Part shown: positions 9,624-50,635 of the stretch, piece after piece
Numbering within the stretch: position 1 is the first letter of the stretch
How the letters are laid out: every line of letters starts with the position of its first letter
Assembly (NCBI GenBank): GCA_965637545.1
Contig: OZ281495.1
Coordinates: forward strand, 8,494,001 to 8,558,000
Origin: Phallusia mammillata
Lineage: Eukaryota
Reading direction: 5' to 3'
DNA length: 64,000 nt
Notes under the pieces: model-generated
What the model saw: the letters and a program-made list of their open reading frames with translations, nothing else
Told to the model about the DNA's origin: nothing
The model's database searches: none
Made by a program: the position numbers and the translations under genes

Positions 9624-12600
9624 TTATGCTGAAAATCCTTGAAAGGTCTCTCGCAGAATTTGTTCAATTGTATTTGTTGAAACATAGCTCGACGATGCTC
9701 TGAAACAAAGCAATTTTTTTTGTGAAATCCCAACAACATAACCTCAGACGTATAACCAAAAGGTAATAAGCGATATTTGATTTATAATTTTAACTCATCA
9801 AGGTTTTCATTTTAATCAAAGTTTTTACGTGATCCAATCAAAGCACACACACTTAAAAACTCTATGACTTGTGTCCGTGTGTAGTCTATAATCGTATAAC
9901 CAATATGTGCATCGAGTTAAATATCCTGGAGTTGACAGTATTTCGCTTAGAGAAGGTAAGTATGGCACCACAAATACAACATTTTTGGTAAATGTGTGTA
10001 TGCCCAGTCAAACTTTTAGGGTACATACCTACACAGACTATATAAACCTAAAATATTTGGGTCTGGGCAATTGGTATACAATCGGCCCTAAAAGTTTGTG
10101 AATATAAGTCGTTAGGCCTACTAAGTAGAATCATTACGTGGTAGATGTTAGAATATAGTTGAAGTAGACGTTGTGAGCTGTCCCTGACATGCAGACTTTG
10201 TTGTCTGTTTGGTCTGTGTTTTTCTGCGAATCCACATAATGTAGAGAACTGTATCCTGACGAGCCAAGTTTCTAAACCATTAAATATAGGCGTATGTTGC
10301 TGAAGCAGATTTTGGCTTTGAATAAATAGAACCTATGTACACGGTATATATATATATATATATGTATATATATACAACTTTCGTTTAAAATATTAAAGAT
10401 TTGTTTTGTAGTGTTAATATAAGCACATCTTATAATTGTTGTTGGAACCAAAACAAAATCTAAAAAATCACTTATCAACTCAGTGTTATACTTTAGAAGG
10501 TTGCGCTATTCTAAGCATGCAAGCAGCAATAAAGTTTTATACATCTACGTACTGGACTTGACACTGTGAAGAATATCTGTATGATGGAAGGGTCGTCTGT
10601 TCCGTATACTTGATACAACACGTAATGTATGTTGTAAGATCCAACCAATAAAGATCCAGTATTCCACCTATAGCTTCCACTGCCGTCTGCTCCCAGATTC
10701 CCGCTTTCCTGTCAATGTAGTGTTTGAAAATAAAATTTGAAGGTTTAACGTTGACTTTTCAGAACTCCAACTAGTTGACAACACATTTCAGAACTCCAAC
10801 TAGTAATTAACATTTTGCAAAGAAATCCTTGACCTTTTCTGTTGAAGATTCTATTTAAGAAAAAAACGTCTGCAAAACCTATTGCATTGATTTTTAACGT
10901 AGGTGTTATTACACCCTAAATGTTTTTTTGACAATTTTCTTGGAATAACTTAATTAGACTAACATGTTTTTATTTTATGGAAGAAGGATAAATGAAATCC
11001 AAGTTATTATTTACTGCTTTGAAGTCGTGCTTTGTATCATTGACGTTACCTCGATGTTATACTGCCAGGATCTTCCATCAGGATTCAACACCAGCATGGA
11101 TAAGATGAATGGGTGCAACGCTTTACATACCACGGAAAAATAGCCCTGTGGATGGCTAGACAAACGATAAAATTACATATTCCAATAAATCAACTTGAAT
11201 TTGAGTCATAAGCAAAATAATGAACCTTGAGGTCAACAAATGGTTCAGGTGGCACGATTTAAATGTAAGCTTTTGGCACTGAAACTTGTCATGCAATTCA
11301 TATGCCAGTGACATAAATGCAAGCCAGCCACTTTTGTAGTGACCCGTGTCGTGTAAGCCCAGTCAGCTGCCAGTGACACCTGTCATGCTAACCCAGGGGT
11401 TTCCAAACTTTTTGGTCTATGGCCCAAATGTCTATGATTCGTGGCCTACCATGTGCTGTAAATTTGGGCACAAACAACAAAATAACTCAAAAACAGGCGA
11501 AATGGTTTCTAGCAATTTATTTTTAATCAGATACATGCTCCTAAAAATTGGCTGCAAGATTCCGAATTCTTTGCAAACATTATGTTTTTCAAAACAAAGC
11601 GCATAATACCTACAGTATAACAAAACAGCAGAGTCTTGCTCTGTGGCACATTGAAAATGTCTTGATGGCCTAGTACTGGGCCATGGCCCACAGTTTGGGA
11701 ACCACTGTGCTAACCGAAGTAAAACACCCTCGAGCGATTTTAAAATGTTTTTATAACGCAGCAAAAATGTTCTGCAACTGTACGTGGCACTTACTAATAA
11801 TTCGAATTGTAAATGACTTGCACTTTCGGTTCGTTGTTTCTCCAGACTTTCAGCTAAATTAGTAAAAAATAAATTATGTTTACAATTTAAGCTAACTTAA
11901 CAAAAAATAATAGCCTAAAACCTGTTGTTCATTGTTTACCTACGTGTCAACATAGAATCCAGTAAACCTAGTTTGAATTAGCCTACATAACATTGTACCT
12001 TATTTCCTGTGTCATACATATCGTCGCCCCCATCATATATGCTGTAACTGTTTTGTCCGTCGTAATTAAACTCGTAGTAATTGGGCAAACTGCGTGGAAA
12101 AATGCTTGACGAGAAATTGGAAAGTGCATCAAAAAATGAAAAACCTTCAAAAAGTATTTGCTCTTAAAAGATTGTGATTGGATTATAATTGAGTTGAGTT
12201 GAGTTGAGTTGAGTTTATTTCGCCGGTGATACAAATCGTAGCAGCACAATTGCACTAAAATATTCACCAAGCCGGAAATAGCTGCGCAACGTTGGGACGT
12301 TATAAAGCGCGACAAAGGTAAGGGCACAATTGGTGGAAAGATGATAAACGCGCTGCAGCTACACCGTTACTAATAGCGTTATGTGGCAGGGACTCACAAC
12401 GGAGGGTGAGGTTGGCGCATTGGGACATCAAGACTGGGGGGGAAACGTTGGTGGAACCAGCCAGGTTGGGACCTAATCTAAATTATAAGATGAACTTACT
12501 TTGAATTGGGCATTCTCCTTTTGACGCGCTTAGTGAGAGTCTGGTGGACAAGTTTTCTGTTGAGAAAATCGTACGAATGATTAAGAAATATGTTTCTCTT

Positions 12601-15600
12601 ATTTATAGGAAAAAATAGGCTATTCTATGACATACAGCAATGTAGACATAATTTTTTTTTCTGACACCATTTTATCGTTTCTATAGCCTACATTGTGCAT
12701 GTTTACGAATTCCAAATAGACCAGTTTTAATTTCGTTTTACCTTGTAAGATTGAAAATCCAGATTCTATAGTTGACATATTGTGCTGCAACGTTTCTAAA
12801 CACAAAAGTTACAAGTCATTTATAGTTTCCTTGTAAAATATGTTTCGTGGTCTGTAGGCCCATAGCTTTTACTATTTAACTAATGTTGATAATTTTTCAA
12901 CGGTATGTGAGTAAAGTGTATTAAAGCATTTAGTCAAGTTAAAAGCAGGACCGGGAAAGTATTTAGGCGACTAATTACGCCTGTCGATTGAGGCCATATA
13001 GTCAACGGATATTCGAATAACAGAAGTAGCCTAGTTTGATTTATTCACTCGTTGTTTCACTAAAGGCAACCACTATGTCACATTTAAATGTAAAAAAGTT
13101 GTGTTTGAAAGCCACAACTGCGCACATGACTCAACGAAGTCGGGTAGTGACCCAATCTAATAGATTTAAAGAAACCGAAAATAAAAAGGAAAACAACTCT
13201 TGTATTGCAAACACGGAAATGTGCATCGCAGAGTTTTCAACATGGCAAACTTGTGCAGGAATTAATATTTTCGTGGTCTTGTTAATTTCCGGGAAATATT
13301 TGAAAGGAACAAATCCAAAAGCTCCATTCGCAGCTGTTTATGTCGTGAAATTTTTGGCAAATAAGATTTGCTTTTTGTTCCCTTCAAAACAACGACAACA
13401 CTAAAGTCAAACTACATTGCTCTAAACAAGAGGAACCTAATTAAACTAAGGACATTGACTTTACCACGTGGAAATAACTAAACAATAAGTAATCCAGCAG
13501 GAGAAACAGAGTTGTTTGTCGGGTTAGGTTTGGGCGCGTGTTCACGCTTTTATTGATTGTTTTTCTTAACGAGGATCAAAATGTAAACAAACAAACAATT
13601 GCTTTTAGCTTGCTACAGTGCCTACAAAATGCATGCACCCAGTGTTGTGTTTTGTTTTTGCTTGTTGTATGTAATTCAAGAAAGCATATTAACTTAATTT
13701 TCTGATGCTGCAACTTTTCAAGTCGGTAGTTTAAGATTATTCATTTTACGAAACCTGTTGTGTGAATTCATTGTGTCGACGGGTCATATGATAGCCGTGA
13801 CCTTTTAGCATTACGTCATTAGGGTTCGACTCTTACTGATGAAAGTGAAAATTGTTGTTGACAACGATCAGACCAATACCGACTGCAAAAAATGTAGCTA
13901 CACGATTGCTCTAACAAATCAGCAAGCTGGTAATAGCTGCGTCATGTTAAAACGTTATGGAGTGCAAACTATGGAAAGGGAATTTGGTAAATGACGGATA
14001 CATGTTATTGAGTAGAAGTTTGTCTATCTGACCTAGATAACTTGAATGTTGCTCCTGGATTGATTCCAAACTGTTTAACAGCGAACTTAGATTTCTCTCC
14101 AATTGACCTAAAATTTCGATTAAGTATTAAATTGTGATATTGCAAGCCTTTTATTATTCGACAACTCTAAAGTTTTGTCATGATAACTAGGCCATCCCAA
14201 TAAAGGTTTACCTTCGAAAGCTGTCAAAGTTGTTTGAATTGATTCAATGTTGTTGTTTGTGGTGTTGAGCCGTGGTAGGCAGTTTGTATTCATTGCTGGA
14301 CGAAAGAGGCATGTTAAGTTAATTTTAAATATACGGCAATAATGTGAAAATATCGTGAAACAATGCTTGGATCTTATTAACAAGTTCACCATCTAACATC
14401 ATTGACCAAACAGCTACAATGTCAAAGAGTGTTTAAGATAAATTTTTAGTTGAATGCAAGAACATGAACAGGAAGAGACCGTCTTAACTGAACAAAAACC
14501 CGACTTACCACGCCTCTTCGTGTCATCAGTCTTGCAGTTTGCCCTTGTCAGAGTTTTTATTTCCAACCAGGTTTCTGAAATAATTACAAATGTTGAAATC
14601 AATATGTGGTATTTATTAATCAAGCGATAGATAAATTATTTCCTATTCTTTCCAAGGTCCTTTGGAATAGGTCTGGTCTTCCTTTTCCGATTTTTAACTT
14701 TTTTTTCTTATGACACAACCATTTTACCTTCGTTCGTGGTGTGTTGGATCAGTAAAGCGTTAACATTGTTTGATATCGAGGTAATGTTGTGCTTTAACTC
14801 TCCTGCAAAAACAAAAACCGTTGTAGCCTTTTATTGGGCATTTATTTCTATTTAAAAATGGATGTGCTTTTTCTATCTTACCTTTCAACAAATTAAAACT
14901 ATTCTCAACAGATCGACTTTCCATGGTTAGAACGTTGGTTTGTTTCGCCAAGTTGGTTTGCAAAGCTGAAAACACGAACAAGTTATTTAAGCTAATTGTC
15001 GGTTTTCGGTTGACCCTTTACTTTGGGTTCACATGTGTCCAATTTGAACACTGTATCGTGGCATTCGCAATAAACCGTTAGTTGAAAAATGTAATTGGCA
15101 CCGTAAGAGCAAGATGCTATAGTGCAATCCCCATTATTTGGCCCAACAAACTACTTTTACAGTATTTTTTCAAATTAAAGGGTATGTTTCGCCTACAAAC
15201 ATAACCTAAAGTTCGTTGACCAACCTATTTATGCCAAATACCCAGAGGCAAGCAGCACAGGTGCCAAGGCTAAGGAGTCTGAGTGTGGTCTAAAGGTGAC
15301 CATGATATACATTCGAGTTGTTGAAAATTAAATAATAAACAACATTCAGATAAAATTACTAACTTATATAAAGTGTCTTATGTAACAAACAATTCGGACA
15401 TTGTTTGATAAATTTATTTATATTTTGGCCACCAAAGTCTAAAGTCAACTACAACGTATAAGTGTTGGTTAATACATAACAAATGATCGTGCAATAAGTA
15501 ATTGTATCCTCTTGTGGCGTCTACTTCCGGAATTGATTGAAATGCTGGGAGAGAAAATAGGCACGGCCCTCATTTCTTTTTTTACCCAAGCACTCCAATA

Positions 15601-18600
15601 GGCAAGTGCCAAATATAATTTCTTTCTTGACTCTCACATTTACGCTTACTAAAGTAGTTTTTTTTGTGTTTACAAATCAGGTAGATTGAATCCGTGACAG
15701 TTAAACATTTGTTTTTTTTGACTAGAAAATTATATTGTTGTTTGGAAACACAGACAGTAATGTTTACAGCTTAATCGAAAGTAAAACTTGTAATTAAAGA
15801 CATTGTAATTTTTTTATTCTAAACAATCCATGGTTATTATGAGTGCAATTTGTTCGTGATACCATTATTCGTTGTATAGTTACATAACGGAAGGAGAAAC
15901 GTGACGTAAGCGCTGACGTCATACAACAACAAAAGGAGTCAACTTCATTACCTTGAAGATATTTCTCTGAAGTTGCTGTAGTTTGAGAGATATTTCCAAG
16001 TGTTTGAAGAATCAAATTCGATTGTTCATCTACGATTTGTAGTTGTTTGGTGAAATTGAAAGACACATTTTGCATCAAACTCAATGTTTTTGCCGTGTAT
16101 AATTGCTGCATTTGATCTAAAGAACCAACAGACGTACAAGAAAAGTAACTTTTAGGTTTTATGATGAAATTCGAGTCAAAACAAACCAGAAAAGTGGGAA
16201 AAAACGAGTCACAAACTTGAATGCATTCATTTAATATCATAAATTTCAGTTTTTCAATACCTTTCTGATTTTTTCTTTCGTCTGTTAGAATTCTTGCGAT
16301 TTCAGTGAAGTTGTGGTGCAAAGTATCTTGAAACAGAGACAAATTGAAACAACTCGAAGAAATTTGTTTTACGAAACAATTAATACACAGCAAGTTATCA
16401 TTTAAGTTAGTTTACCTTTCATCTCACGCAAATCTTTTGAAACTGATTGCAAGTCGCAGCTGGAGTTGGTTAAACTATTCTGAGGCAACTCTATGAAACA
16501 AATCACTTTGACTAATTCGCGTAACTAATGTTATTGGCCTATAGAGTTGCGAACTTGTAACACGAGACATGACGTTTCAGGGCTTCCTCGATTATTCGAT
16601 CCTCGTTTTACCGTCATTAGGGTCGCAAGACAATGTCGTAAAATATAAATTGCAAAGCTTCATACTTTCGATTTTGTTTTAAATTGCGAAACTATTTCAT
16701 ATATTTTTTATGTTGAAAGGTAGAATTGGCCAAATCGTTTTACCTGTCAAAAAAAGCATAAAGTATGGTTTAATGCAATTGTCTGTTTTGCCTATCCTTT
16801 TTTTTGAAAAATGTAAAGTACAAACTAAAATAGATAATTAAGGAAGCACTTGTATTATAAAATAAGTTTCGAGTTTCATGCAAGTTTCAATTATTTTTAA
16901 CAGATTTTCTGACACAGGTGTCTACACATTCTCACGAAATATTGTAACATACAAAAAAATGTTACCTTTCGTATTTGTGACACTGCTTTCAAGTCTAGCC
17001 AAGCTACCAATAATAACGGACAGGTTGTGTTGAACTTGGTCTGAAAAATTGCAGAGTGATTGGCAGTCGGCTATTTCGCTATAACCAGTTTTACCCACTT
17101 AAATCAAAGTATAGTGTATATAATATCCAACAAACAAAACAATTTAGTTCAATTACCTCCTTGATTCTCTCTTCTGTTTAACATGCCGAAAATTTGAGTT
17201 AGGTTGTGGTGTATAATATTTTAAACACAGAAAAATATATATGGTTTTTGTTTATGTATATTAATACGATTTTGTTACCTTTTATGTCGCGCAAGTCCAT
17301 TTTAACTGATTGCAAATCGCGATTTGAGTGGGCTAATCTTGCCCCAATTAATTCTGCAAAACAAAAGACTTTTACAAATTAGGGGACAAATAACACAAAA
17401 TATCACAATGTTGTGGAATATGCATTATTGGTTTCTTGAATTTAGTTTTCACAGCTAACTACTAACATCAGTATGCCGAACTTTTCAATGGTATTGTACC
17501 AGATCAACGTTAGACATCAATACGATATTTTTTTTATCTTACCTTCTGTGTTTCTTGAAGCGTTTTCTAGTCTCGCCAAACCGTCAACAATCGCCGTCAA
17601 GTTGTGTTGAACCAAATCTGAAAACGTAAATGCTGACCAAATTAAACTGAAGAATAAATTAATTTGATTTTGTTGCTGGCTAAATTTTCCGAGTTGCAAG
17701 CGGTTCTAAATCCTTTTTTTAAAATAAAGCCCAAATTAGACTTAATTGTAATCATAAAGGTAAAAAACGACACAAACGTGACGAGGGTAAAGCCATGACC
17801 GACTCAAGCCCGTTTTATTCAAACATACAACTCGCTAGTCTAGGAAAGCTACAGTTTAAAATGTTCAACCAGGCCCCATAGAATGAGCAGACAAATTAAT
17901 GCAATCAGACTGAAGAGAAGGTAAAACAATAACTACTTTGAATTTTGGAATTTTGATTTAATAAGCTTTTGAAATCATTCTCATTTTTCGCATGTCCATC
18001 TGTACATCGCCTGTAAAGTGGAACATAAGCAACAACGTTAAACAAGAACGAAACGGTTCATTGCATTTTTAAAACAGTTTATTTGTACGACAATATTTTC
18101 ATTTCTATATTTTTAAATCTCTGTTTGTAAAAGATAATTGCATTTTTTTTACTTTTCACATGAAATGTGGACTAAGTGATTCAAACAAGAGTCAAATGCA
18201 TTTAGATCTCATACTTTTCGGGACTTTGAATTGATCATTAAAAGAAGATCCAGAAAGTTGTTGATTTGTGAATGATGGTTGTATATTTTCTCTTCTGATT
18301 TCTGCTTTCACTTTGGCAGAAATCTAACAAGTTAAAGCAAACATACTTGAAATGAATGCGATTTTAGTCTTCTTTGTAAACAAGTACATGACGTTTAAAT
18401 GAACTTGACCTACACTGCTGTGATTTAAATAATCTATTCAAAAGAATTTTCATTTTGATGTAACCAGATATTCACCATATACCCTAACTTTTTTGAGCTT
18501 AGCAACGTGATGTGCAACTATTTCCGGTTTGGCTAACGTGCTGCTACGTTTTCTAAACGAAAACAAAGTTAGTTCAAAACGAAAAAAAAATTATGATGTA

Positions 18601-19274
18601 ACCACAAAATTCTTTGCATTCCTTAGAATGACAATGTGCCAAAAAATGTTTGTAACATTTCGCACACGACTAACTAGATTTCCATCGTATAACTAAAATG
18701 AGCTTATACTTAGATTAAACTTCCATACACTCATACCGAAAAATAAAGAGCTACAAATCCGACAGCAAAAATCAAGATCAGGGAAAGAAGACACAACCAC
18801 ATCAGCTTTAGATTTCTTTGGACACTTTTTAATGCTTCCATCAGCTTCTCTTCGCGTATTTTGTTGTTTTCCATCTCGCAAATGTCTTGATCTGTTTCTG
18901 CAAACCATACGACGAAACTGGTTTATCAAAAAAAAATTGGAATTTTAAATGAGTTTGAACTTGTAAAACCAAAAATTATTTTAACATACGTCTTTAAAAG
19001 GCCAATATTTCGTTTTCTTTATCCTATGTAACAAATATTGAAAAGAGTGGGGTGTATTGGAAAACAGGTTCTTTAGAAACTATTTTGTACAAAACAAACT
19101 CTCAGTTCTGTGACTCAAGATTTATTAAAAATTGAAATTTGATCCGTTTGAACTTAATATATCTTCGGCATTTCTACGTTATATCTTTCTTCCAGGTGGA
19201 TTAAAATATTGCTCCGTACCGTTTTGCAAAAACTCCATCGGAAATCCAGGCGGGTCATTTTCCGAACTAGTCAT
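9624..19274 (-). CDS. G1: type II membrane protein (cytoplasmic N-terminus, TM, N-glycosylated coiled-coil stalk, unrecognised C-terminal domain), about 570 aa
   Basis: 17 phase-consistent exons: 19220-19274, 18737-18897 (TM LMWLCLLSLILIFAVGFVALYFS), 18215-18323, 17543-17617, 16966-17040, 16261-16326, 15952-16116, 14882-14965, 14509-14574, 14212-14295, 12742-12795, 11999-12162 (..YDGGDDMYDTGNK), 11050-11145, 10553-10708 (GNLGADGSG..VYGTDDPSII), 10138-10271, 9853-9945, 9624-9699. Total 1713 nt, open to the stop. The 11999-to-11145 junction is the least certain. Confidence 0.8.
10346..10373. repeat. (TA)n microsatellite
   Basis: Run of TA dinucleotides with one interruption. Confidence 0.9.
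11394..11707. mobile_element. hAT MITE in a G1 intron
   Basis: Ends CAGGGGTTTCCAAACT / AGTTTGGGAACCACTG. TSD TGCTAACC at 11386-11393 and 11708-11715. Confidence 0.92.
12186..12480 (-). mobile_element. Non-LTR retroposon (SINE or LINE 3' end) with AATAAA-(ACTCA)n tail
   Basis: Reverse-complement match to 57690-57960. Ends in CGAAATAAACTCAACTCAACTCAACTC. Other copies lie at about 8085-8190(-), 23890-24140(+), 40940-41060(+, partial) and 59040-59350(+). Confidence 0.75.
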
Positions 19275-25815: not shown

Positions 25816-26166
25816 TGTTACCAATTCTATCAATGAAACTTAACGGTTTTTAAACGTTTCAACTTTACACAGCAGCTAACTGCAAATGAATTGTTGCAAA
25901 TTTATTACAAAACAGCGCAATTAAATAACACTGAGTCATACTGTGTCACCTGAAACCGAGTTTAAGCATGAGTCGGCATTGTTGTTTAACATTTAATTCT
26001 TTTATCGCAGAAATACGAGTAAATAACGTAGCTAACAACTATAAATAAAATTTTAAATGTCACCAGTTGCAACCGATGTTTTAGGTCAGGGATACACATC
26101 CTTTTTATCCTTTCTGACCACAATATATTGTTCTGTATTTCGTCATTGGTCGCCAGTGTATCTAAT

Positions 26167-33800: not shown

Positions 33801-36800
33801 ATAAAGCAACAAACTAGTTGAAACGCCAATGTGGGAAACTTTAGTTGAACAAAACACATTGTAATTATAAATGGCCCATGCCCTTTCCCACACATTCAAT
33901 CAAGTGTCAAAACTTAACGCTTAATCTGCTTCTAGTCTGCTTTAAGTATTACCGCTTCATTTTCGGTCAGCGCTATGTAATAATTTCACAAAACCTTTGG
34001 TGCGAGGGAGTTTATTGTTGCGAAGGGTCATATAATATTAATGACATTACGCCATGAGTAATCACTTCTATTTGAATACAGTATATAGAAGTGAAAGTCA
34101 TTGTTAACAACGATCAGACAGTAATATTTTCAATAGGTATGATTTGGATTGCAAGTGAGATTATGGACAGAATTTTTGTCCTCCAAAAAACAGATGGAAA
34201 GTAGGCACAGAGTTCCTGTTTAGTTTTTTTTCAAAAAACAACAACATTGGAATAAAAGTCTAAGACAAACGTATACATTCGTAGGATTGCAAGTAGTACT
34301 CCAGGGCCTAAAACATCACCATACTAACGAGGCAATCGTAACAAAGTTTTACCTTTCAAAGCTGTCAATGTTGTTTGAATAGATTCAATGTTGTTGTTTG
34401 TTCCGGTGAGACGACTCGAATAATTTGCACTCATTTCTGGATGAAAAAAGCAGAATTAATATGGATACATGGATACGCGACAAATGTTCAAATATGACTA
34501 GAAACCGATATTTTGTCTTGTACATCAGTAACAAATCTGTTGTATACATGACCGAATCAGAAAGTTCCAGTCTGAAATCCGATAAAAGCATAAAATTAAA
34601 GACAAAATTACACTTTTGGTCAAGGAAATGTGGTCAAATAAAAATGTAAACTGCGTCTTTGCTTTACCTTGAACGTCGAACATTCTCGATTCCATGGTTG
34701 ACATATTGTGCTGCAATGTGCCTAAACAAATAAAACAAATACGTTATAATCAATTAATTTTTAACAAGGCTTGTATGCAATGCTGACAAACACAAACAAA
34801 TATGTTAGTTAGGAGGGGATATATATCTATAGCGGCGCTTGAAGTCGAGATTCATTTCAAAAACATATAAGAGAGGCTATGAACTATGGAAAGGTAGACA
34901 GGTATCTATTTTAACCACGTGCTTAATACAAGATCAAGGTAAAAAGTTTGATTGTTTAAATTCAACACTTGTTCAAAATTTTGATGCAAAATAGGATATT
35001 AAACCGACCATCCGCTTATAAGCACTTTATTAAAGAGTCAAAACTCAACAAGCAACCTGCTTCAAGGAAGTATCTTAGCTACAATGAACAATTTTTCATG
35101 TGATTGTTTTGACAAGAAGCGCTAATTAAACGCTTTCGTGTCGTCATTTCTGCACCAAACAATTGAATAAACCTAATGATAACCCCATTTACAAATCAAT
35201 CATTTTACAAAAACTATTTTGTCGTTATTGTTGAGGATCAATCATTTTGCGGAAGTTTTTGTGCAAAGCAGTTTATTTGGTGCAGGGGTCACGTGGTGTT
35301 CAAAATGTTTCAACTTTGCTTCAGCTCGGCTTTGAATTTTGTAAATGAAACAAATTGTTTGCAGTCACTTTTGGCGAACCACATAGCAGTTATTTGTTCG
35401 ATTGCATGATTCAAATACTTTTGATCTAACAAGTTTTCAAGCCATAAGGGTAATCTATGTTAAAAAAACAACGCTTTTGTAGTCACATTCTCACCGAGCG
35501 TGACTAAAAATTGGCTCAAGATTTTCAATGGCATCATTGCATATACTTTCGTATAAAGTGCAAACACAATGCATTGCATGTTTCCTGGTTTAAAATCATG
35601 ACATCGAGCAAATGTTTAGGTCACCAACGTTGATGATTTTTATGTTGCTGTTTAATTGTTTCTAAACCGCTTGACACAGAAGGTTTTTCGCCATTTAAAT
35701 GATTGGTTAAAACGCAGTTACGAGCGCGCTTTAAAAGTTTTCGCAATATGAACCTATGCATTCATACGATTGTATGTAGTACTGAGCCTAAATATCAACA
35801 TAATAAGGAGGTAATCGTAACAAAGTTTTACCTTCCAAACCTGCCAATGTAGTTTGGAGAGATTCAATGTTGTTGTTTGTTGCGGTGAGACGACTCGAAT
35901 AATTTGCGTTGATTTCTGAATGTTCCTTGAGAAAACGTCAAATATATAACAAATATAAGCAGGTTTAAATGTTGATACACGACAGGTGTTTGATTATGAA
36001 TAAAAACTGATATTTTATCTGATACATCAGTGACAAACATAGGACCGAATGTTGTATACAGGACCGAAAAGTACCAGACCGAAAACAAAATAGGAAAGCC
36101 ATTATTAGGCTTGAATGTTGTTAAAATTATGCCATTTTTAAGAAATTGTAAATATTTCACGTGCAGAAATAGCAATCATGGTAATATTAAAATCATGGTA
36201 ATATAGTAATATTTTAATAAAAAAATAACATCAAGTTTAGGATAAAATTATCCCGAATAAAGTCCCCTATAAAAGTAGTCACGTTTAGGTTTCGCAATGA
36301 TAAATATCTAAATGTGGGATTGCAAGTTGTACACTAGAGCTTCAAATATCACCATAAGAAACAAGGCAATAGTAACTTATAACAAAGTTTTACCTTTTAA
36401 AGCTGTTCTTTAGTAAAAGGGTTTACAAAACAGCATGTTTTTTTTTTATCCACAAACTAATATGCTCAGACCTGGAACATTTTTAAATTAAACCCAAGAA
36501 ATGATTTGCGCGGAATAACACCATTTCTGATAAACGGAAAATTTTCTCGATTTTTATGAAAAAAGCTTTTTTAACGTTATACGCGGAAAGGTACTATTTT
36601 TCAAAAATGATTTGGAACTGCTCAATTACAACTACTAACGAATAGCACCGTTTATGAATAAAAAACGTCTTATCATACCACTTATTTCCATCATTCCAAA
36701 TTTTGCAGAAATCTAGTAAAAAACAAAATATCTAGTAAACACGTAATTTTGATGTGCTGATATATCTATCAGTCGTACCGAGAAATAAAGAGCAACAAAT

Positions 36801-38233
36801 CCCGTAGAGAAAATCAGCAGTAGAAACATTAGACTCAACCACATCAGTTTTCGAATGCTTTGGACACTTTTTTGTGTTTCAATCATCATATTTTCCATTT
36901 TTTCGTTTTTTCTCACTTCGGAGGTGGCTTGAAACGTTTCTACAAATAACACGAGAAAGTATAAATATAAATGCATACACTAATTCAACAACACTAGGCC
37001 TACCATATTTTCATCCCCCCAAAAGAGGACACATTGTTGAAAGAAAATGAAAAAATATTTTAAGGGCATCCCCCAAATAAAAGCCTTCGAAATTAGACGC
37101 TATAGAATAGTTTGCATAAAGTTTAACGTTTATCACATAAAATACGCTTGTATTTTCAAAAAAATGTAAAAATATTCAAAAAAATAAGCTGTAATTTGGC
37201 TGCCTTCAAAGGCATGATTGTCACATATGTATTTGGTAAATCAGAAATTCTTCGAAAACGAGGACATTTGGGCACTTTTTCTTGTCTTTGGAGGACAACA
37301 AGTTTTTTGTTAAAAAGGAGGGCATGTCCTCCAAAAAGAGGACACCAGGATTGGAAGAAAGGTAGACAAACATGTAAGGTTTTGAGGTTGGTCCGTAATA
37401 TTGCAACAAAAATAGCTCTGAATAAAAGCTCTTAAAAGTGCGGAAACTGGACAGTTACGCACAATGATGCAAATATTAGGCCGAACCCGAAAGTACAAGG
37501 GAAAAAATGTTCTAAACGTGAATGACCTTGTGTTCGGTTCCGCAACCAAATTGTTACATCAAACGTGCAAATGGGCCTGAAGTTTGAGCCCGAACCCGAA
37601 AGTACAAGCCCGAAACCCGGCCCTAACCCAAATCGTTTTTGAGAAAAAAAGCCCGTTTATGCCTGAAAGTTTGATTGACAGGCCTATACATTGAAGCCCC
37701 AGAAAAGAACAAGATAACAAGAACAATAGACAACATAAGACAATCGGTCTAAAACCAGACTGTTTGACAATAGGTCAGCTCCAGCATGTAGCTAATTACA
37801 GTTATTTTAAAAAAATACTGACATGGAGTGTAAATGCAGACCCGAATCATTTCTGAACAAACCAAGACCCAAACCCGGCCCGAAAAGCTTGGCCCGACTT
37901 ACAACTTCGTGCCACATATACCCAAACACAAAAATCTCAAAATGTACAAATATACGCAACAATTAAACCACATACTAGCTGCGTATATATAACCAATCTA
38001 AAATATTAACTACTCAACCTTGCACAGATGGAAAGTTCGTAACTGGCACATTTTTGTTTAAAATGTTGGTTCGCCCCAATCAACAGTTGAACTGATTCGG
38101 AATAATGTAGCACCGTTTCAAAGTGACAATACATTTAGGTCAGGTATAAGCAACTAAAATGAAACACATTCTACGTACCATAAACTTGCTCCTCTAATTC
38201 CATTCCAGGCAGTTCACGGTTTTGTGTATTCAT
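30858..38233 (-). CDS. G2: type II membrane protein, TM + coiled-coil stalk + MAM domain, about 318 aa
   Basis: Exons 38179-38233, 36779-36939 (TM), 36679-36712, 35832-35915, 34668-34721, 34353-34436, then MAM exons 32857-33003, 32528-32611, 31810-31841, 31420-31504, 30858-30994; 957 nt, open. MAM motifs FSCDFECGLCNF..W..TGPSADHT, GHYMYIETS..ARLVSP, LQFHYHMYG..IGTL.V, WSLSGNQG..W, FQVVFEG..GDIAIDDV. Confidence 0.9.
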
Positions 38234-39586: not shown

Positions 39587-40699
39587 TGTCTTCAGCAGTT
39601 ACTTGTAAAGCTTATGACTCCAAGTATACAAAGTATAACACTTGTTACGAATAGTGTTACTCATTTGCACTGGTTTGTCACTGCTTCTGATTGTTGCTGC
39701 GTCACTAGATGTTACTCATTTGTTTTTTGTTTCACCTTTGTTATCCTCTTTTAGTTTTTCCCATCTGCTTTGTGCTTGTTATAGTTCCCGTTAACATTAC
39801 TTTATTTTTTTATTGGGTTGAAATCACCGGCGCGCCGACTTGGTATTCCATTGCGTTGTCCTAATTGCACTTTACTCATTCACCTTTTTCTTTGAAACAT
39901 TTGCAATCAATCTCTGGAATAACTATTGCCATTTCCCCATCAAACGAGAGGGCGGTGCAACTGTGATCCGGCAGACTTGTTTGGTCGACATTTGAGTAAC
40001 ATGTACTTTTTTTGTGCCGACCTATGGTGCCATTTGGTCTCGTTTTTTTCATATAGTTAGGTGCAACTTAAGCCCATATTTTTTAATTTAAAGTGACCCT
40101 TATAGATTGCTTTTACAAAAATAACCAAAGCCCGAACTGCCTATCCGCCCTATGTGTTTGTGAAAACATTAATAGCATTGCGCGGTCCATTCATTGACTT
40201 GTCGTTATAGCTGCGCCCGGGACCTCAGGCGCAAAAACAATAGCGCGACAAATTCGTGAGCACGCCAGGATACTGCAGCCGGGCAGGATTGTGCGTTAAA
40301 CTGCCTACCAAATTAGTTGATTTTATTCTTGTGGCTTTAAACGTGTGCATGAAGTACCCTGTACTATAATCATTAATGATTTTAATAGTTACCGTGCAAG
40401 TGTGAAGTTGACAGACAAAACCCAAACATTCTTGTTACTTACTCATGCCGACAAAAACAAATTGTTGGAGTTTACCGACTTTTTTGCGCTAACGTATACA
40501 AGTACACTTTCAACAAATTTCTATCCAAAGCAACGAAACATAATTTTAACCACGCCAAGTACAGCGCCATAAAGGATAGAGTTCAACAACCGAACATATC
40601 CCCATGTCTTTGTATATGCACTCCATCCCTATTGTCACCAAAGGACTGTATGACAGGATTTTGGCTACTGGCGTACAGCAAAACGTTCGAGAGTGTATT

Positions 40700-40815: not shown

Positions 40816-41442
40816 GAGAGTGTATTGTCGCGGCAAATGTTGCCACAGGGGCCAGTGCCCTCTTCTGTGCACTTTTCGGTCTCAGTGTTAAAAAAACAAG
40901 AGACATCAGCAGATTAAATCCGCCACTCTATTTCATGTATATTTCTTTCGGCACTTGAAACTATCCGGCAGGATTTCTTGCGGTGGTTTCTTTATTTGTC
41001 GAACCCCATCCCTTTTTCCTACAATACGGGTTGTTAGTTTCTAGCCCCCCTCAACTGGTCTCACTAACATGCGCGACCAAAAGGTAATGAGCAAATTTTG
41101 TTTGAGTTTCTAATAAAGGGAAATAGTATTTTGGGGTCCGTGACTCCGTAGATTGAATTGATAGGTTTTGAACCACAGTTCTACTGCTTTATTTTTGATG
41201 TAGCTCAAATAGACACCTCTACTAGTTATAAGCTTACTGTGTATTTGTTTTCAAGAAATAAACACGCAAGCAATGCATACATTTAAAATGGCTTACATTA
41301 AACATTTTACCACATTTGGTAAAATTTGCCCATTAAGTTAGAACAACGTTAAAAACATCAAAACATGTAACAAGCGATAAATGCTGTATAAAGCGGAAGT
41401 GGGTTAAATACCCTTGTGTATTTCGTCATAATAGAATTCAAT

Positions 41443-44400
41443 TCAACAGTTAAAAAGTTTGGTTGTTACGTCATCAATCGCGATGTCACCGTGGAAATCC
41501 GAGCCTCTTGTTCCCTCAAAAACAACCTGAAAGGACTCCGTCGAAGTAATGGTGGCGCTTCCCAACGACCAAACGTCACCTGATAACATGGTTTAATTTT
41601 AACTGTATCACATATGAAATTGATATGGCCCGGTCTTATCTCATGCGCCAGGTTTTAACAAATAATGTGCCACAAAGCGTTGCTAAGTATGATCTAATTA
41701 ACTGTAACCAGACAGGCCCTTAATTTTGTATGTTATACCGAGGGCTTTGCTTGTTAAAACAAACACACACCTGTATCGAAAAATTGCAAATTAATTTTTG
41801 CGTTGCCTACTTGGTTATGAACCAATAACAAAAAAAAACAGTTGTTAAGTGTTACGTTAGTAATCGTGGCGACACTACACTGCTTCGTATCACAATAACC
41901 ACCGTTTAAACTAGATTGAAATGGACATAAAAAGAAAAAAGCTTTTAGCAAACCCTCCCAAAAATCCTTAAATTGTTGTTTGTTTTGTAAAACGGCACAA
42001 TCTATTTCCTTACTTTGGTTGCCGCTCAAGCTCCATACTACTTCGTTTGGAAGAGTTGGTCTCTTTAAATAGACTCCCAAGGTCCCAATGTCGATGCCCT
42101 ATATGCAAACAAATCCATGTAGTTTTTTATGTATTTGAAAAGGAGATTGATGGTGTACCCATTAGGTGTTTAAGAAATCTTACTAAATGTTTTTTTTTCT
42201 TTTAAATGCTGATGAATATTTAACTTTTGATTGTTTATCAAAATCCTTCGCGACTCCCAGGAAAAAGGCAACCCCCATGAGGGATGGACCCACAGATTCA
42301 AAACAAGTGTTTTAATACTTACATGCATATGGTAGTAAAACTGAAGACATTGACCTGTAAAAATTATCAATTTTTTATGTAAGTTGCAAATAGTATCCTG
42401 TGAAACACATGAAGACAGCAAATAACAAGTTAAAACACATACAGAGTTATAAATGAACCTGGACAAGCTAAAAAAGTACTAGAAGCTGGAAATGATACCA
42501 AATTTTCTCTAATTGTAATATATTGCGTTTGCAAACCTTTAAACCTACAATTAAGCCTTTGTCTAATATTTGTGCTTTGGATATAACTTTTATCTGTTAA
42601 TTTAGAAAATGTTTGTTTTATTTTGTGTAAAATTACATAACTGGATAATTTGTCCAACAGAAAAATAAATATGAGACAAAATTAAATCACTTTCTTACCA
42701 TTGGTTGGTGGCAACATTGGTGAAACAAGTCTTGCTTTGTCATGCAATTGTCGAGGACTGCTGGTTTCGATGTACATATAGTGACCTATTTTAAAATATT
42801 AATGAATCTAGTAAATAAATACACAACGTCCCTTCCTGGTAATCTTTTTTTAAATTTTATAACTTTGCTTTTTGTACAAAAGTATCAAGCTAATTTGAAA
42901 CTTGATTATTTTGCTGCATTTAATTTTCAGATCGTGTTACTAAATTGAACAAGTTTAAGTGTGTTTTTCTGCTGTTAGGTTGAAAAAATATCAAAGTTAT
43001 ATGGCATTTTTTAATTGGCATTGTTGATTAATTCCCCTTTTTTTCTTGCAGGGTACTTTAGTACTAACCTTCAGTAGTTGCAAATGTATGATCTGCACTT
43101 GGACCTGTACTATCTGAAGACGTGGACCCGTTATTTCTTGTCCAAGTAAAATCGGCGCTCAAATCATCAGTGAAGTTGCACAAACCACTTTCAAAGTTAC
43201 AACTAAAAGGTATCCCGACTAGAAAACAAGTACATAAACACCCATTTTAGGTTTTGTTCTGCCTCTAAATATTTTTTATTTTATTTAAATTCGTTTATTC
43301 CTTGGGCTCGAACTTAGTTAGGTGTTAGATTACGATGGTGGCGTGAATTAATATTTTCCAAAAGCACGTTGTGAGGTACAAAGTCACGGGTCACGTGATA
43401 GCGATGCAGATATATTGGGATAAAACCTTAAGATGAACTTACTTTGAAATCTCGAAGTGACCTGTGCTGAAAGTATGCCCAAGTAATCTGTAGCAACAAT
43501 TCAAAAAAGAATAAAAATCTACAACTTTTATTATTATTTCTTTGCCGTTTTGCAAGTAAATAGGGGAGACCGGGAATAGTTCGGAAACTGGGATACCCCG
43601 CATAATACTTATTACGTCAGTTCACAATATTGATTACAATCAGCTACACATTCAATACAAAGCAATACATCGTTTAGTAGCAAGTTTTGTTTTATTTAAT
43701 TGTAAATTGTAAATTAGCATAAGCATAATTATTATCAAAAAACCAGATTTTTAAATGAGATTCGTAAGGGTGTAGTTACACCGCACATGACTGCTAGATA
43801 CACCATAGAAAGTTTACACCATCTGCGTAAATGGAAACATAATAAGGAGATAAGAGTTTGGATGTTCGTTTTACCTTGTAAGTATGAAAGTTTCGATTCC
43901 ACGGTTGACATGTTGTGCTGCAATGTGTCTAAAAAAAGTTGACGAAACTGTTACAAATTAACGAGTTTCGCTTTTACTGTGTCAGGAGAAGTTAGGATAA
44001 CTTAAAAAGTGTTGGACAATGCCTATGAACTAGAGCAGGCTTCACCAAGCTTTATTCATGGCGGGCCTAAAAACACTACATATGACATAAGAGAGGAAAA
44101 AAGAAGAACTGCCTTGAACATTGTTATATTAAAATGACAGTCCGCTTTGCGGTACTTTAAGCGAGACTCGAAACCCAACAATCAACCTGTTTCAAGGAAG
44201 TATCTCAATTTTCTTTTCATGAGTAAACCTTTTGTTACTTATTTCTAAAAAAAACACAATCACCTTACGAAACCACATGCGCTATTTCTGGATCAATAAC
44301 CTTTCAAAACCTTTCTATACCGCTATTGTTTAGGATTAATCATTTTCCGCAACGAATTGTGTTAAGAGTTTGTAAGGGGTGAGGAATCACGTGATAGTCA

Positions 44401-46076
44401 AGATGTATCAGCTTTGTTTCAGCTCTGCCTTGATTTTTGTGAGTGAAACTTATTTTCTACAGCCATTTCTGGCCTATCACAAACGCTTTTCTAACCACAT
44501 TCCCACAGTGCATGACTTAAAATGCGTTATTGGTTTATGGTTTTCAAACAACGCTATTGCGAATAGCTTTGTATATATGCAAGTACACGGTTTAAAAATT
44601 CTTAACATCAAGCAAATGTTTTAGTCACTAACTTTGGTAATTTGTATGTTGTTCCTGAATAGATTCCAAACCTAAAAAATGAGTAGTTACTGGTGTCAAA
44701 TGAAGGTTTTAAAAGCAAGTAACTTTTTCAAAATTCTAAAATGTGGAACAGATAACAGTTTATGAATGTAATGGTCCAATCTTACCTTGTCTTGTTTTCA
44801 TTTCCACTTTTGCTGTAATCTAGTAAAAAACAAACGTATTTTAGATGTTCCGATCTTTCTTGGTGTTTTTATAGCAATGTAGGCCAACGTCGTTACAAAA
44901 GTTTAACTAACTAGCAAATGTTTGTCATAACTTAAAAAATAAGGTGCAAAGATTGATTCTTTGTTATAACGTTTCTTTACTGAACAAATCAACTTTTGCA
45001 CAATCGTACCGAGAAATGAAGGGCGACAAATCCGACAATGAAAATCAGGAGTGTGATGATTAGACTCAACCACATCAGTTTTCGATTGCTTTGGACGCTT
45101 TTATTGGTCTCCCTTATCATGGTTTCAAGTTTTTCGTTGTTTCTCACTCTGGTTAAGCTTTGCTTCGGTGGTGCACAATTTTCTGCAAAGCACAAGACAA
45201 AAGAAATATCACAGCACGGCATATGTAACTAAAAAACTAGGCACACAGTACGTACAAACAAAAATTGCGTTCTTTAGAGTAACGTCGACATTACGCAATG
45301 TTGTTACGTCAGCATATGATTTATATCAGTGGTCGGCAACCGCCGGTCCGCGGCCCGGTACGGTCCGTGACGAGTTCGTTACCGGGCCGCATAATTTTTC
45401 AGGTTAAATGCTATAAAACATTTTGCCCATGTATCCCGGGGATGATAATCTAATTAATGTGTTTTCATTGCTAAATATTTGTAGTTTTTTGAAGACCGGT
45501 CCGCGATAAAATTTCACTTTCAAAACCGGTCCGCAGTAGAAAAAAGGTTGCCGACCCCTGATTTATATGACATCAGATCGTAATGTAGCTAGGATATCCA
45601 ATGTCAATGTAAGAACATTCGTATTGTGTCTCAAAAGTGCGAAACTTTACGACATTTACACACAATAATGCAAATTTTAGGTCGAACCCAAATTTACAGG
45701 TGCCAAACCTGTTGCAAACCTGAACGTTTTTAAAGCCCAAATAATGGCCGGACGTTTAGTTAAGGAACCAATTTGCCAGATATACGCTGACATAAAAATA
45801 TCGAGATGTACGACAACGACAGGTTTCGAACTAACAACCTAACCTCGGCTGGATTTACTCTGTAGTGGTGCCCATAACTCATGTGCATAAGTGTGATACG
45901 GGTTTACATTATGTCGTCTCAGAGTAACAAAACGTTTATGTCAGGTCCATATCCAGCAAGGAGTTGAAACTGAATTTTACGGTTCAACTTTACGTAACAA
46001 AACAAAACAAATCCTGCGTACCATAACATTGTTCCTCCATTTCAATCCCAGGCCGGTCACGGTTCTGTGAACTCAT
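41443..46076 (-). CDS. G3: type II membrane protein, TM + short stalk + MAM domain, about 268 aa
   Basis: Exons 46022-46076, 45010-45182 (TM), 44786-44819, 43875-43928, 43069-43218, 42699-42785, 42323-42354, 42014-42098, 41443-41579; 807 nt, open. Same MAM exon structure as G2. Confidence 0.9.
45327..45560. mobile_element. hAT MITE in G3 intron 1
   Basis: Ends CAGTGGTCGGCAACC / GGTTGCCGACCCCTG. TSD ATTTATAT. Confidence 0.92.
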
Positions 46077-47840
46077 TGTCTTTACCAGTTGCTTGTAAAG
46101 CTTATCACTCAGACAAAGTATAACTCTTAATACTCACATCTATTTATTGTGTTTTAATCGGGGTACGAATAGTTGCTGCGCCTTCTGCTTTCTATGCGGT
46201 CTATGCTCTAACGAGTGTTTTTCTTCCGCGAAAAAATGCTTAGTCTGCATTTTGTACATCGGAGGGGATTTCCCTTCAAGAATGAGAGAAAACCTACCTA
46301 TGAGTTTGGAAAGACAGATTTTGATTTCCATCTGGAAAATGAATAAGCCGAAATAATTTAAGTGGGACGCAAACACGATTTGTGAGAATGTAGATGCAAG
46401 AAAAGGTACCGAGTACAGATTGACGTTGATTTTCTTTTTGAAATACTACGACACTTTGTCGCCCTCAAGTGCGCTTTGTTATTGAATGCGGACACGTATC
46501 GTTTTGATTACTTTACCTTTTTGCAAAGAAAAAAAGTATCGATTTGATCCACATCCTGCCGGTTCCCATATAGGTGAAAAGTTCGGGTTTAGATGTCCAT
46601 GTTTTTGTTCCTTTATCAACAATATCTTGGATTTCGTATAAGTGGTTTTAAAAAAAGTAGTTCTAGGTAAAAATGCCTAGTGTGGTAAAAATCGAGGCCC
46701 AAACCCGAAAGTATAATCCCGAATCCTCACCGAACCTAAACTCTTTGAAAAATAAAGCTCAAATGGGCCTGAAAGTTCGTGAAGTTATTGCACAAACATG
46801 ACCAGGCGTAATTTCGGGCCAAAATCATATCAGTTTCGTTCACATTTAAATCCAAACAAAGCACAACCGGACCCGAACCCAAACAGAAAAGTCCGGGCTA
46901 ACTTACTCTAGTAATATATGTTACGAATAATGTTACTTATTTGTTTGTTGCACTGTTTTATCGTTGCTTTTGTTTGTTGCTTTGTCACTACATGTGCAAA
47001 CCTTTCCAATTGATCTCGTTGTAACTTTTGTTTAAGTGCAACTTGAGCCCAATGTTGTAAATTGAATCGCGCCATTTACATTGCTTTTAAGAGAACTGCC
47101 AAAGTCAGTATTGCTTTTCCGACTTTGTGTTGAAAACATGATTTGTAGTTCGCGGCATATTTATAGATTTCACCGGATAGCCGATAGAGCAGTGTCCAAA
47201 ACCCTCGGCGCAATCCAAAACCTCGGAGCGCGCCAGAACGCTGTAATCAGAAAGGACCGCGCGCCTCTCTGCCGACCAAGGAAAATTTATTTATTTGTAT
47301 GATTTCAAATGTGTGTATGAACCCGTCTCTCTTTATGATCGGTGATGATTTTGATAGTTTTATTGAAGCTTATATTTCGCATCGTCCAAGCGTGAAATCG
47401 ACAGAAATAGTTAAAACTCACTTATTGCTTACGCATGTCGACAAAGATTTTTTGTATATATACAAAGACAAATTTGGTATGCAAAGAAAAGGAACATGAT
47501 TTTAACCACGCCAATCACTGCGCCATGTTCTTATGAATAGGGTGCAACAACCGAACGAGTCCTTACGTGCCTTTGTATATGTGCTTCAACCCCTGACGGT
47601 TAGAGGGTCCGTAAAGGCAAAAGATGCCAACGTCAAGAACGCGATGTTCGCTCAAGGGACAGGAGTTTAGCAATTGTCGTTGTGCAAAACGTAAAGTACC
47701 GAGAGTTTGTCGCCACGGCAAAGATGACCAAAGGCGTCCGGCCCCCCTTCTGTGCCTTTTCCAGTTTCAGGATTACAAAAGCAACCGGAGACCTCAGTTT
47801 ATTGACGCCAACTTATAGCAATGTATGTCATCTTTTAGAC

Positions 47841-49117: not shown

Positions 49118-50635
49118 CGAGAAATGAAAAGCGACAAATCCGACAGTGAAAATGAGAAGCGGAAAAATCAAACTCAACCACATCAGTTTTCGATTGCTTT
49201 GGACGCTTTTATTGGTCTCTCTTATCATGGTTTCAAGCTTTTCGTTGTTTCTCATTCTGGTGGTGCTTTGCTCTGGTGGTGCAAAGTTTTCTGGAAAGCG
49301 CAAGACAACAGAAATGTCACAAAACGGTATATGTAACTTAAGAATCGCCTTAGAAGCTTATGCGATCTATTATGTTTGAAATCTTGCAAAACCAGAACTT
49401 ACGTTCTTTGCAGCAATGTCAACACTGCGCAAATGCGTTCATTCACCGTATTGTTTATGACGACTTTAGTATAACTATATAGGGCAGTGGTTCTCAAACT
49501 TTTGTATTGTCGGGGCCAAATGGTAGTATTTCAAGTGTGTAGGGAGCCGCAAAAAAACGAAACCTGGAGAAAATCACTAAAGACTATTACCTTGAAAGCT
49601 AAAATATAAATGTTTGGTGGTTTTCTGAGGTCTGGTGCGAGCCGCAAAATAAGTAGTTGGGAGCCGCATGTGGCCCCGAAAACCGGGTTTGAGAACCACT
49701 GATATAGGGGGTTCCAACTTCCAATGTCAACAAAAAGAAAGACACATTGCAATTGCACTGCTGTAACAATGCAATTAGCGTTTGTTGTAAGTTTTGAGAA
49801 GAGGTGCAGAAAAATATGTACACCTTTGTATTAAGTTGGCTGTGGTAAAATCTACGACTGGGAGATCAAACACGCGGCTCACGGGCCAAGTGTATTTGTG
49901 CGACCCACGAAAAGGTATGTGTTTTACTCGGGCCGAATACAAAGCCCAGCCAGTGACTGCTGGACTCATTATTAGTGAAGGTATAGAGTTGGCTTAGATG
50001 CGACGTTTTAAAGGATTCTTGCAGTGGCTAGTTCGGCCCTCGACTCACTTTAAAAATTGTTGGCCCTCAAAATAATATTAGTTTGAGACTTTTGATCAAA
50101 GTAGTAAATATAAAATATAGTAAATTTACAAAGTAGTAAATATAACTGCAACTTAAAACAGCTTTAAACAAAAACCTCGCTGGTCGCCGAACATGACGTT
50201 TATAGTGATTCAGATTTGTAAGCGTTCCAACATAAAATCCCAATGCGATGGTGCCTTTAAAGCCCGAATTGAGACCGAATATGTAGCTTAGCATTAAGTT
50301 AACCAAAAAAAGCCTACATAAAATATATGCAGAATATATTAGGTACACAACAATTAAATTAATATACAACATGTGCGTGCCCATAATTAGGAATTAGCTA
50401 TTTATTCATTTATTTTATGATCTCATTTACTTAATCGCTTATAATTCCGGCTTCGAAAAAAGTCAGGTTAACAAAACGTTGTAAACTAAAAAATTAAGTC
50501 AGGTCCGTAACAAGTTTAAATTGAAAATTTCAAGTCCAACTTAAACTTCACCACACTTATACAAAACCAATCCTATGTACCATAACACCGTTCCTGCATT
50601 TCCATCCCGGGCTGGTCTCGGTTCTGTGCACTCAT
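49118..50635 (-). pseudogene. G4: orphan exon 1 + TM exon cassette (partial duplicate of G3, or alternative 5' module)
   Basis: Exon 50581-50635 (MSAQNRDQPGMEMQERCY) and exon 49118-49290 (TM LMWLSLIFPLLIFTVGFVAFHFS) are both intact with good splice sites. Similarity to G3 stops about 16 bp after the TM donor, and I found no downstream stalk or head exons before G3. Confidence 0.7.
49485..49701. mobile_element. hAT MITE in G4 intron 1
   Basis: Ends CAGTGGTTCTCAAAC / GTTTGAGAACCACTG. TSD ATATAGGG. Confidence 0.93.

Follow-up and report, generated by a model that had tools for sequence, protein, structure and literature searches.

We analyzed a 64,000-nucleotide (nt) stretch of the genome of Phallusia mammillata (positions 8,494,001 to 8,558,000 of contig OZ281495.1, assembly GCA_965637545.1; hereafter, the window), which contains a cluster of related exons. 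They define a genuine family, duplicated in tandem and probably with more members, of predicted type II glycoproteins with a transmembrane (TM) helix, a stalk, and a MAM domain. The window is AT-rich (G+C approximately 36%), and the exons are short and separated by canonical GT-AG introns, consistent with animal DNA. Six-frame translation, motif searches, and tblastn searches of the window with segments of one of the genes, G3, placed every feature of the receptor family on the minus strand, and the tblastn searches found no additional family exons in the rest of the window. Two members, G2 and G3, are intact genes that end in a MAM domain, a third, G1, has a longer stalk followed by a different sequence, and a fourth, G4, consists of a 5′ cassette only. 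A fifth first exon, which was not listed in the preliminary description of the locus as a four-member tandem family, lies upstream of G2.

The 5′ exons are homologous in all of these members. We located five copies of the first exon, four copies of the TM exon, and three copies of a third exon characterized by the motif I[ST]AK, in agreement with the earlier assignment of the first two exons to G1–G4 and of the third to G1–G3. The first exons each comprise 18–19 codons and close in a phase-1 donor (G/GTAC, with the slash marking the exon edge). The TM exons have a phase-1 acceptor (AG/AA) and a phase-0 donor (TCG/GTA), and 23 of the 57 columns in their alignment are invariant, including KSVQ, KLMWL, LIF, GFVA, and FS, mostly within the hydrophobic helix. 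A search of the window with a degenerate pattern of the I[ST]AK DNA sequence gave exactly three perfect matches, one each in G1, G2, and G3, and none for G4. The phase scheme that results (1, 0, 1, 1...) is repeated in three independent genes. Exon matches between paralogues had tblastn E values of 1e-5 to 1e-35, which, together with reading frames that remain intact over 9 and 11 exons, excludes chance as the source of the similarity.

The chained exons of G2 and G3 are bounded by canonical AG/GT sites at 18 of 18 introns, and in both genes a stop codon directly follows the last cysteine of the MAM domain. This domain is encoded by five exons in each gene and comprises approximately 160 residues when assembled. 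Four single exons of G2 and G3 (in G2, exons 7 and 11) matched the Pfam MAM profile (PF00629) with scores of 30.6–41.4 bits, against a gathering cut-off of 26.4, and jointly span profile positions 1–42 and 112–157; the MAM head that had been read from the translations of both genes is thus confirmed. Searches of PDB sequences with the MAM exons returned the MAM domains of enteropeptidase, MDGA1, an SR-C-like scavenger receptor, meprin, and neuropilin, and the best match to the first MAM exon was enteropeptidase (E 8e-9). G3 has all four conserved cysteines (the N-terminal CxFE...C pair, the CLxF cysteine, and the C-terminal cysteine). In G2, a tyrosine replaces the CLxF cysteine and the N-terminal motif SCDFECGLC contains an extra cysteine, so that four cysteines are present in another arrangement. 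The introns of G2 and G3 can still be aligned at approximately 73% identity, compared with 80%–85% for the exons. We considered one alignable block (44292-44481 in G3 and 35195-35383 in G2) as a candidate exon and rejected it, because it lies within homologous introns and the frame does not need it.

The stalk is encoded by mini-exons of 54, 66, 75, 78, or 84 nt, all of phase 1/1 with AG/GT sites, which fall into homologous types. G3 has one such exon, G2 has three, and G1 has ten, to which an eleventh, whose GTCAGA donor is weaker, can be added. The counts given previously were correct for G2 and G3 and too low for G1, to which eight exons had been assigned, and the proposal that the stalks are built from homologous phase-1 exons whose number varies between paralogues is upheld by the exon types that the genes have in common. 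The 54-nt type (TLQHNMST...) is present in G1, G2, and G3 with approximately 80% DNA identity and is the final exon before the head in G1 and G3; the 84-nt type is common to G1 and G2 and occurs twice in G2; and G1 contains a duplicated two-exon unit, in which the first stalk exon resembles the third and the second resembles the fourth. A decayed stalk pseudo-exon (IIHHNLTQIFG..., 17217-17152, minus strand) lies between the second and third stalk exons of G1; it has kept its GT donor and has no AG acceptor. N-x-S/T sequons are present in almost all stalk exons, often within the motif [QHK]HN[LFIM][ST], and number 11 in G1. The G1 stalk (247 residues, including 2 prolines and 6 glycines) shows a hydrophobic periodicity of 3.5–3.6 residues with a z score of 5.65, which was reached in none of 500 shuffles; the z score of a MAM control was 0.18. 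This periodicity is consistent with an amphipathic helix capable of coiled-coil formation, through which chains might oligomerize.

Table 1. Positions of the receptor-family features in the window
Feature	Positions	Strand	Remarks
G1 first exon and TM exon	18737..19274	minus	
G1 first exon	19274-19220	minus	ATG at 19274
G1 TM exon	18897-18737	minus	
G1 I[ST]AK exon (ISAK)	18323-18215	minus	109 nt, phase 0 to 1
G1 stalk region	12742..17617	minus	
G1 stalk exons, first six	17617-17543, 17353-17279, 17040-16966, 16490-16416, 16326-16261, 16029-15952	minus	phase 1/1
G1 stalk exons, rest	14965-14882, 14802-14728, 14295-14212, 14107-14033, 12795-12742	minus	phase 1/1; weak GTCAGA donor at 14107-14033; last is the 54-nt type
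G1 head exon a	12162-11999	minus	164 nt, phase 1 to 0, 54-codon open frame in phase with the stalk
Presumed remainder of G1 head	9624..11998	minus	exon structure not reliably modeled
G2 gene	30858..38233	minus	11 exons, 318 residues; intact open reading frame, AG/GT at all junctions
G2 exons 1-6	38233-38179, 36939-36779, 36712-36679, 35915-35832, 34721-34668, 34436-34353	minus	first exon (ATG at 38233), TM exon, and I[ST]AK exon (phase 0 to 1), then stalk; 34721-34668 is the 54-nt type
G2 exons 7-11	33003-32857, 32611-32528, 31841-31810, 31504-31420, 30994-30858	minus	MAM; stop in exon 11
Surplus fifth first exon	39586-39529	minus	ATG at 39586; phase-1 GT donor; 1.3 kb upstream of G2 first exon
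G3 gene	41443..46076	minus	9 exons, 268 residues; intact open reading frame and splice sites
G3 exons 1-4	46076-46022, 45182-45010, 44819-44786, 43928-43875	minus	first exon (ATG at 46076), TM exon, I[ST]AK exon (phase 0 to 1), and 54-nt stalk exon
G3 exons 5-9	43218-43069, 42785-42699, 42354-42323, 42098-42014, 41579-41443	minus	MAM; stop in exon 9
Candidate promoter or 5′ untranslated region	46077..46274	minus	about 200 nt upstream of G3 start; 79% identity to 50636-50841 upstream of G4
G4 5′ cassette	49118..50635	minus	first exon and TM exon
G4 first exon	50635-50581	minus	ATG at 50635
G4 TM exon	49290-49118	minus	

In both G2 and G3, the first exon is hydrophilic, no N-terminal signal peptide is present, and the sole hydrophobic segment is the 22-residue helix encoded by the TM exon. 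Because the MAM cysteines and the sequons must be luminal, an N-in/C-out (type II) orientation would be the only consistent reading of this arrangement. In G3, no ATG is present in the open frame that immediately precedes the first MAM exon, and the MAM part therefore lacks a separate start at that place. We propose that the protein would have a cytoplasmic tail of approximately 45–50 residues, made up of the first exon (with its QNR[DE]xPG motif) and an acidic segment next to the membrane; a TM helix of unusual conservation, serving as signal anchor; a short linker with the I[ST]AK motif after the helix; an N-glycosylated, amphipathic α-helical stalk, whose length would be set by the number of phase-1 mini-exons (18–28 residues each); and a membrane-distal, C-terminal MAM domain. 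The chains may oligomerize through a coiled coil of the stalk, the TM helix, or both, with the MAM heads held away from the membrane, where these could bind a ligand or the surface of another cell. Tandem duplication, together with the gain and loss of stalk exons, probably gave rise to the genes in the window, as part of a larger family with copies elsewhere in the genome. A conserved tyrosine that closes the first exon, and that G1 lacks, reads YETF in G2, YENC in G3, and YENF in G4 across the splice junction; we take YETF and YENF to fit a YxxPhi sorting motif and YEN to fit a pYxN SH2-binding motif.

Comparison of the paralogues by the method of Nei and Gojobori, with the synonymous versus nonsynonymous excess assessed by a Fisher test, showed that they are under purifying selection (dN/dS, or omega, of 0.18–0.65). 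Between G3 and G2, omega was 0.38 for the MAM domain (dS 0.30, Fisher p 6e-4) and 0.65 for the N-terminal part (dS 0.44); it was 0.50 for the N-terminal parts of G1 and G2 (dS 0.82) and 0.18 for the cassettes of G4 and G3 (dS 0.47, Fisher p 9e-6). The recommended dN/dS check, made here on the paralogues, gave an omega below 1 in all four comparisons.

We also compared positions 41300-46300 with four sequencing runs, namely the DNA-like run X2 and three RNA runs that included X9 and X11. X2 tiled the interval without differences at a word depth of approximately 80. Its word depth was 460–3600 in each bin holding most of a predicted exon (3634 in the bin of the TM exon) and mostly 77–325 in the intron bins, and many of its contigs had shared substitutions in the exons. 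The exon depth and the shared substitutions indicate that other parts of the genome hold several additional copies with an identity of ≥90%; the depth suggests ten or so close copies or more, a figure that is a rough indication rather than a copy number. In RNA run X11, a 431-nt contig has no introns between the third, fourth, and fifth MAM exons, which it matches with two to five mismatches per piece, and its junction between the third and fourth MAM exons is at the predicted site (positions 303–371 and 379–413 of the record). An 884-nt contig from X11 (depth 51) and a 163-nt contig from X9 match the 54-nt stalk exon only and diverge at its predicted edges, with the X11 contig continuing past the exon in letters unlike the first MAM exon of G3. 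An X9 contig matches the TM exon at approximately 90%. The joined MAM exons and the breaks at exon edges indicate transcription of close paralogues, with splicing at the boundaries that we had predicted. A small RNA signal (share 0.01) was rejected as evidence of exon expression, because its source is a very high-copy repeat in intron 1 of G3 (45308-45641; DNA word depth of approximately 200,000, compared with approximately 80 for single-copy sequence). This repeat was found in contigs of all three RNA runs; it has no tRNA or Rfam match and no second copy elsewhere in the window.

Several observations weigh against the view that G2 and G3 encode expressed type II proteins of this layout. The stalk periodicity is moderate in G2 (z 2.1) and does not appear in G3 (z 0.07), whose stalk is too short to show it. 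The charges flanking the TM helix are weakly asymmetric, and the predicted topology therefore rests mainly on the luminal requirement of the MAM domain and the sequons. No RNA contig derives from G2 or G3 in any of the indexed RNA runs, and contigs linking TM and MAM exons are likewise missing, which leaves the key junctions as predictions. In addition, the paralogue contig with joined MAM exons could be a retro-copy, and one of its ends runs into intron-like letters. Taken to its limit, the lack of contigs from G2 and G3 and of a TM-to-MAM junction would mean that the copies in the window are unexpressed relics, or that the TM and MAM exons belong to different transcripts and the type II layout is an artifact of exon chaining. 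We consider this very improbable, because the frames are intact over 9 and 11 exons at dS values of 0.3–0.47 with omega below 1, the phase logic is identical in three genes, the first MAM exon of G3 has no ATG just before it, and transcripts of close paralogues are spliced where the exon edges were predicted. The RNA runs were few and small (17–34 million letters of contigs) and the tissues sampled are not known, so their silence is weak evidence. It is likely that G2 and G3 are genuine protein-coding genes, duplicated in tandem, whose products are single-pass type II membrane glycoproteins; the same probably applies to G1. The layout put forward in the preliminary description for G2 and G3 thus agrees with the lack of a signal peptide, the single hydrophobic segment, the sequon-rich stalk, and the C-terminal MAM domain, and the splicing that it predicted is respected by paralogue contigs at MAM and stalk exon edges; the link from TM to MAM is the part for which no transcript was found.

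G4 and G3 have in common only the first exon with approximately 200 nt upstream of it (79% identity) and the TM exon (87%), and no I[ST]AK, stalk, or head exon for G4 is present in the 2.9 kb before the first exon of G3. The strong constraint on the G4 cassette argues that it is in use. The surplus first exon upstream of G2 has kept its ATG and a phase-1 donor that is compatible with the TM exon of G2, and tblastn and motif searches of the window found no TM exon of its own. Its flanking DNA is homologous to the first-exon regions of G3 and G4, and short homologous blocks upstream of it (39643-40629) and upstream of the first exon of G3 (46919-47592) indicate that the 5′ regions of both are related.

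From these features, alternative use of 5′ cassettes (that of G4 spliced to G3, and the surplus first exon to G2) appears possible. The array would then comprise two or three complex loci rather than four genes, in which the G4 cassette and the surplus exon have their own promoters and splice into G3 and G2 exons farther downstream, so that one ectodomain could be paired with different tails and TM helices. Such an arrangement would account for a G4 cassette that has no downstream exons of its own and is nevertheless constrained, for the retention of the ATG and donor in the surplus exon, and for the conservation of approximately 200 nt upstream of each start codon; moreover, the TM exon of G4 ends in phase 0, which is the phase in which the ITAK exon of G3 starts. 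However, the TM exon of G3 sits between these two exons and has a good acceptor, use of which would shift the frame, unlike the situation in the protocadherin and UGT1A clusters, whose promoter-bearing variable 5′ exons lack acceptors and are joined to constant exons that they share. No RNA covers the G4 cassette or the surplus exon, and G4 might alternatively have been truncated recently or yield, by read-through, a short anchored protein. On balance, we regard the use of alternative 5′ cassettes as rather unlikely.

The G1 reading frame stays open from the first exon, across the ten canonical stalk exons, and into head exon a, a total of 410 residues. Head exon a carries the motif YDGGDDMYDTGN and has acceptable splice-site scores. 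Downstream of it, strong splice sites are few, and the models that we obtained with a dynamic program combining a splice-site position weight matrix with codon scores were unstable and unconvincing. Pfam gave no match to 12 open segments of the head region, searches of PDB sequences gave only chance-level matches (a thaumatin-like protein and a catalase-peroxidase), and homologue searches on two segments (fragments of 34–115 residues) gave no candidates. In the ESM Atlas, the best score for head exon a was a meaningless 0.59, and the segment 10708-10553 gave a weak lead to bacterial β-sandwich-type domains (score 0.87) with near-threshold protein-likeness (recognition 2149). The intron between the last stalk exon and head exon a contains a dispersed repeat (12202-12481), other copies of which, 73%–89% identical, are at 57682-57961, 59095-59352, and 8087-8177.

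This repeat sits precisely where the stalk gives way to head exon a, which raises the question of whether the original head of G1 was lost by rearrangement at the repeat, which would make G1 a truncated or decaying gene and MAM the sole type of head. The scarcity of good splice sites, the unstable models, and the failure of every search to recognize an open segment all point in the same direction. Head exon a, however, has a 54-codon open frame in the right phase, acceptable splice scores, and a protein-like, motif-bearing composition; 13 of 13 upstream G1 exons are intact and in frame; and the segment 10708-10553 looks weakly like a β-sandwich domain. In addition, the 884-nt paralogue contig leaves the 54-nt stalk exon for letters other than those of the G3 MAM domain, so other continuations occur in the family. 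We therefore find loss of the G1 head somewhat doubtful. The earlier claim that G1 has an unrelated head domain is retained for exon a, which is open and in phase, is the only secure exon of the head, and has no match in any resource searched. That the head is swappable is plausible, with G1, through this one exon, as the example.

Arrays of exons encoding WSC domains flank the receptor genes on the minus strand, between G1 and G2 (21415-28400) and upstream of G4 (56584-62878). Pfam matched WSC at 21418-21774 with 32.3 bits, and the second array was read from open reading frame translations only. The arrangement suggests a duplicated block composed of a WSC array and a type II receptor. Just upstream of G4, open frames at 51082-51612 (minus strand) translate into sequence like the C-terminal part of a non-LTR retrotransposon reverse transcriptase. 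Two plus-strand open reading frames, also judged by translation only, appear to belong to unrelated neighboring genes: one reads like a fragment of a GH20 β-hexosaminidase (3256-3660) and the other like an exon of an RNA-recognition-motif protein (51803-52051). Rfam and tRNA scans of the window were empty.

The TM-stalk-MAM family is probably lineage-restricted. A HMMER profile built from the four TM exons (53 positions, reaching close relatives only) had no matches among 1.84 billion representative proteins, in a library without the proteins of this genome; because the profile thus misses even the window's own protein, this blank is weak evidence of novelty. The genes are apparently absent from the protein libraries searched and, if so, may also be missing from current annotations, to which they would merit addition. 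In the full-text literature, we found no described type II MAM family in ascidians, and the only tunicate MAM gene to turn up was the Ciona orthologue of MDGA2. The earlier impression that this is not a described family therefore holds within the Pfam, PDB, TM-exon profile, and literature searches.

Tunicates are the sister group of vertebrates and have no adaptive immune system, and their receptors for immunity, allorecognition, and self-sterility are partly known. Roles for the present family in immunity, allorecognition, or gametes are pure conjecture. One could imagine a large, lineage-restricted, modular family in which a conserved cassette of tail and TM helix is combined with variable stalks and with heads of more than one type (MAM, the unrecognized G1 domain, and others in unsampled paralogues) by exon shuffling, and possibly by splicing of 5′ cassettes; its members would recognize non-self, microbes, or gametes in ascidians, and the TM helix would recruit a signaling partner. 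We think it unlikely that all of this is correct. The phase-1 mini-exons provide a clean case of a stalk whose length, and possibly head, changes while the frame is kept.

Among known systems, the predicted proteins resemble the class A scavenger receptors (SR-AI/MSR1, MARCO, SCARA3-5, and COLEC12) in their predicted type II orientation, short tail, N-glycosylated helical stalk that may oligomerize, and membrane-distal, C-terminal putative recognition domain. Those receptors contain collagen Gly-X-Y repeats and/or an SRCR or C-type lectin head, whereas the head here is a MAM domain and there is no sequence similarity; the assembled G1–G3 proteins have no Gly-X-Y runs, and Pfam gave no SRCR or lectin matches, its sole hit in G2 and G3 being MAM and the G1 head segments having none. 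CD23/FCER2, DC-SIGN, and langerin are similar to the predicted proteins in having a type II anchor and a helical repeat neck in which the number of repeats varies between paralogues and sets the distance of the head. The 21-residue heptad repeats of CD23 are separate exons, and in this respect they resemble the phase-1 mini-exons described here. These lectins nevertheless have a C-type lectin domain and repeats of 21 or 23 residues, whereas the present family has no lectin domain, units of 18–28 residues, and no sequence relation to them. Because it has no collagen, SRCR, or lectin domain, the family is a member neither of the class A scavenger receptors nor of the CD23/DC-SIGN lectins. Gliomedin and other colmedins, collagens XIII, XVII, XXIII, and XXV, and ectodysplasin also have an N-terminal anchor, an oligomerizing rod, and a C-terminal binding domain, but their rods are collagenous, their heads are olfactomedin, TNF, or none, and they are not homologous.

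With respect to the head, MDGA1/2, the meprins, RPTP mu/kappa, the neuropilins, and arthropod SR-C contain the same MAM domain family. These proteins are type I, glycosylphosphatidylinositol-anchored, or secreted, and their MAM domains stand beside Ig, FN3, CUB, astacin, or CCP domains and serve in oligomerization, homophilic adhesion, or ligand binding. The statement in the preliminary description that MAM usually occurs in type I or secreted proteins has an exception in enteropeptidase (TMPRSS15), the best PDB match to the first MAM exon, which is a type II membrane protein containing MAM and, to our knowledge, the only type II protein among MAM proteins. Enteropeptidase is a large mosaic (SEA, LDLa, CUB, MAM, SRCR, and serine protease) with an internal MAM domain. 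In the present family, by comparison, no globular domain other than MAM is present, MAM sits at the C-terminal end of a helical stalk, and G2 and G3 encode no C-terminal trypsin-like protease, their frames ending right after the last MAM cysteine. As predicted here, the TM-stalk-MAM layout is a variation on an already known receptor design, and no match for the layout itself was found in the searches run. If the prediction is true, a MAM domain on an N-terminally anchored helical stalk of variable length would be a new receptor design, analogous to that of the scavenger receptors and the CD23/DC-SIGN-type lectins and independent of both.

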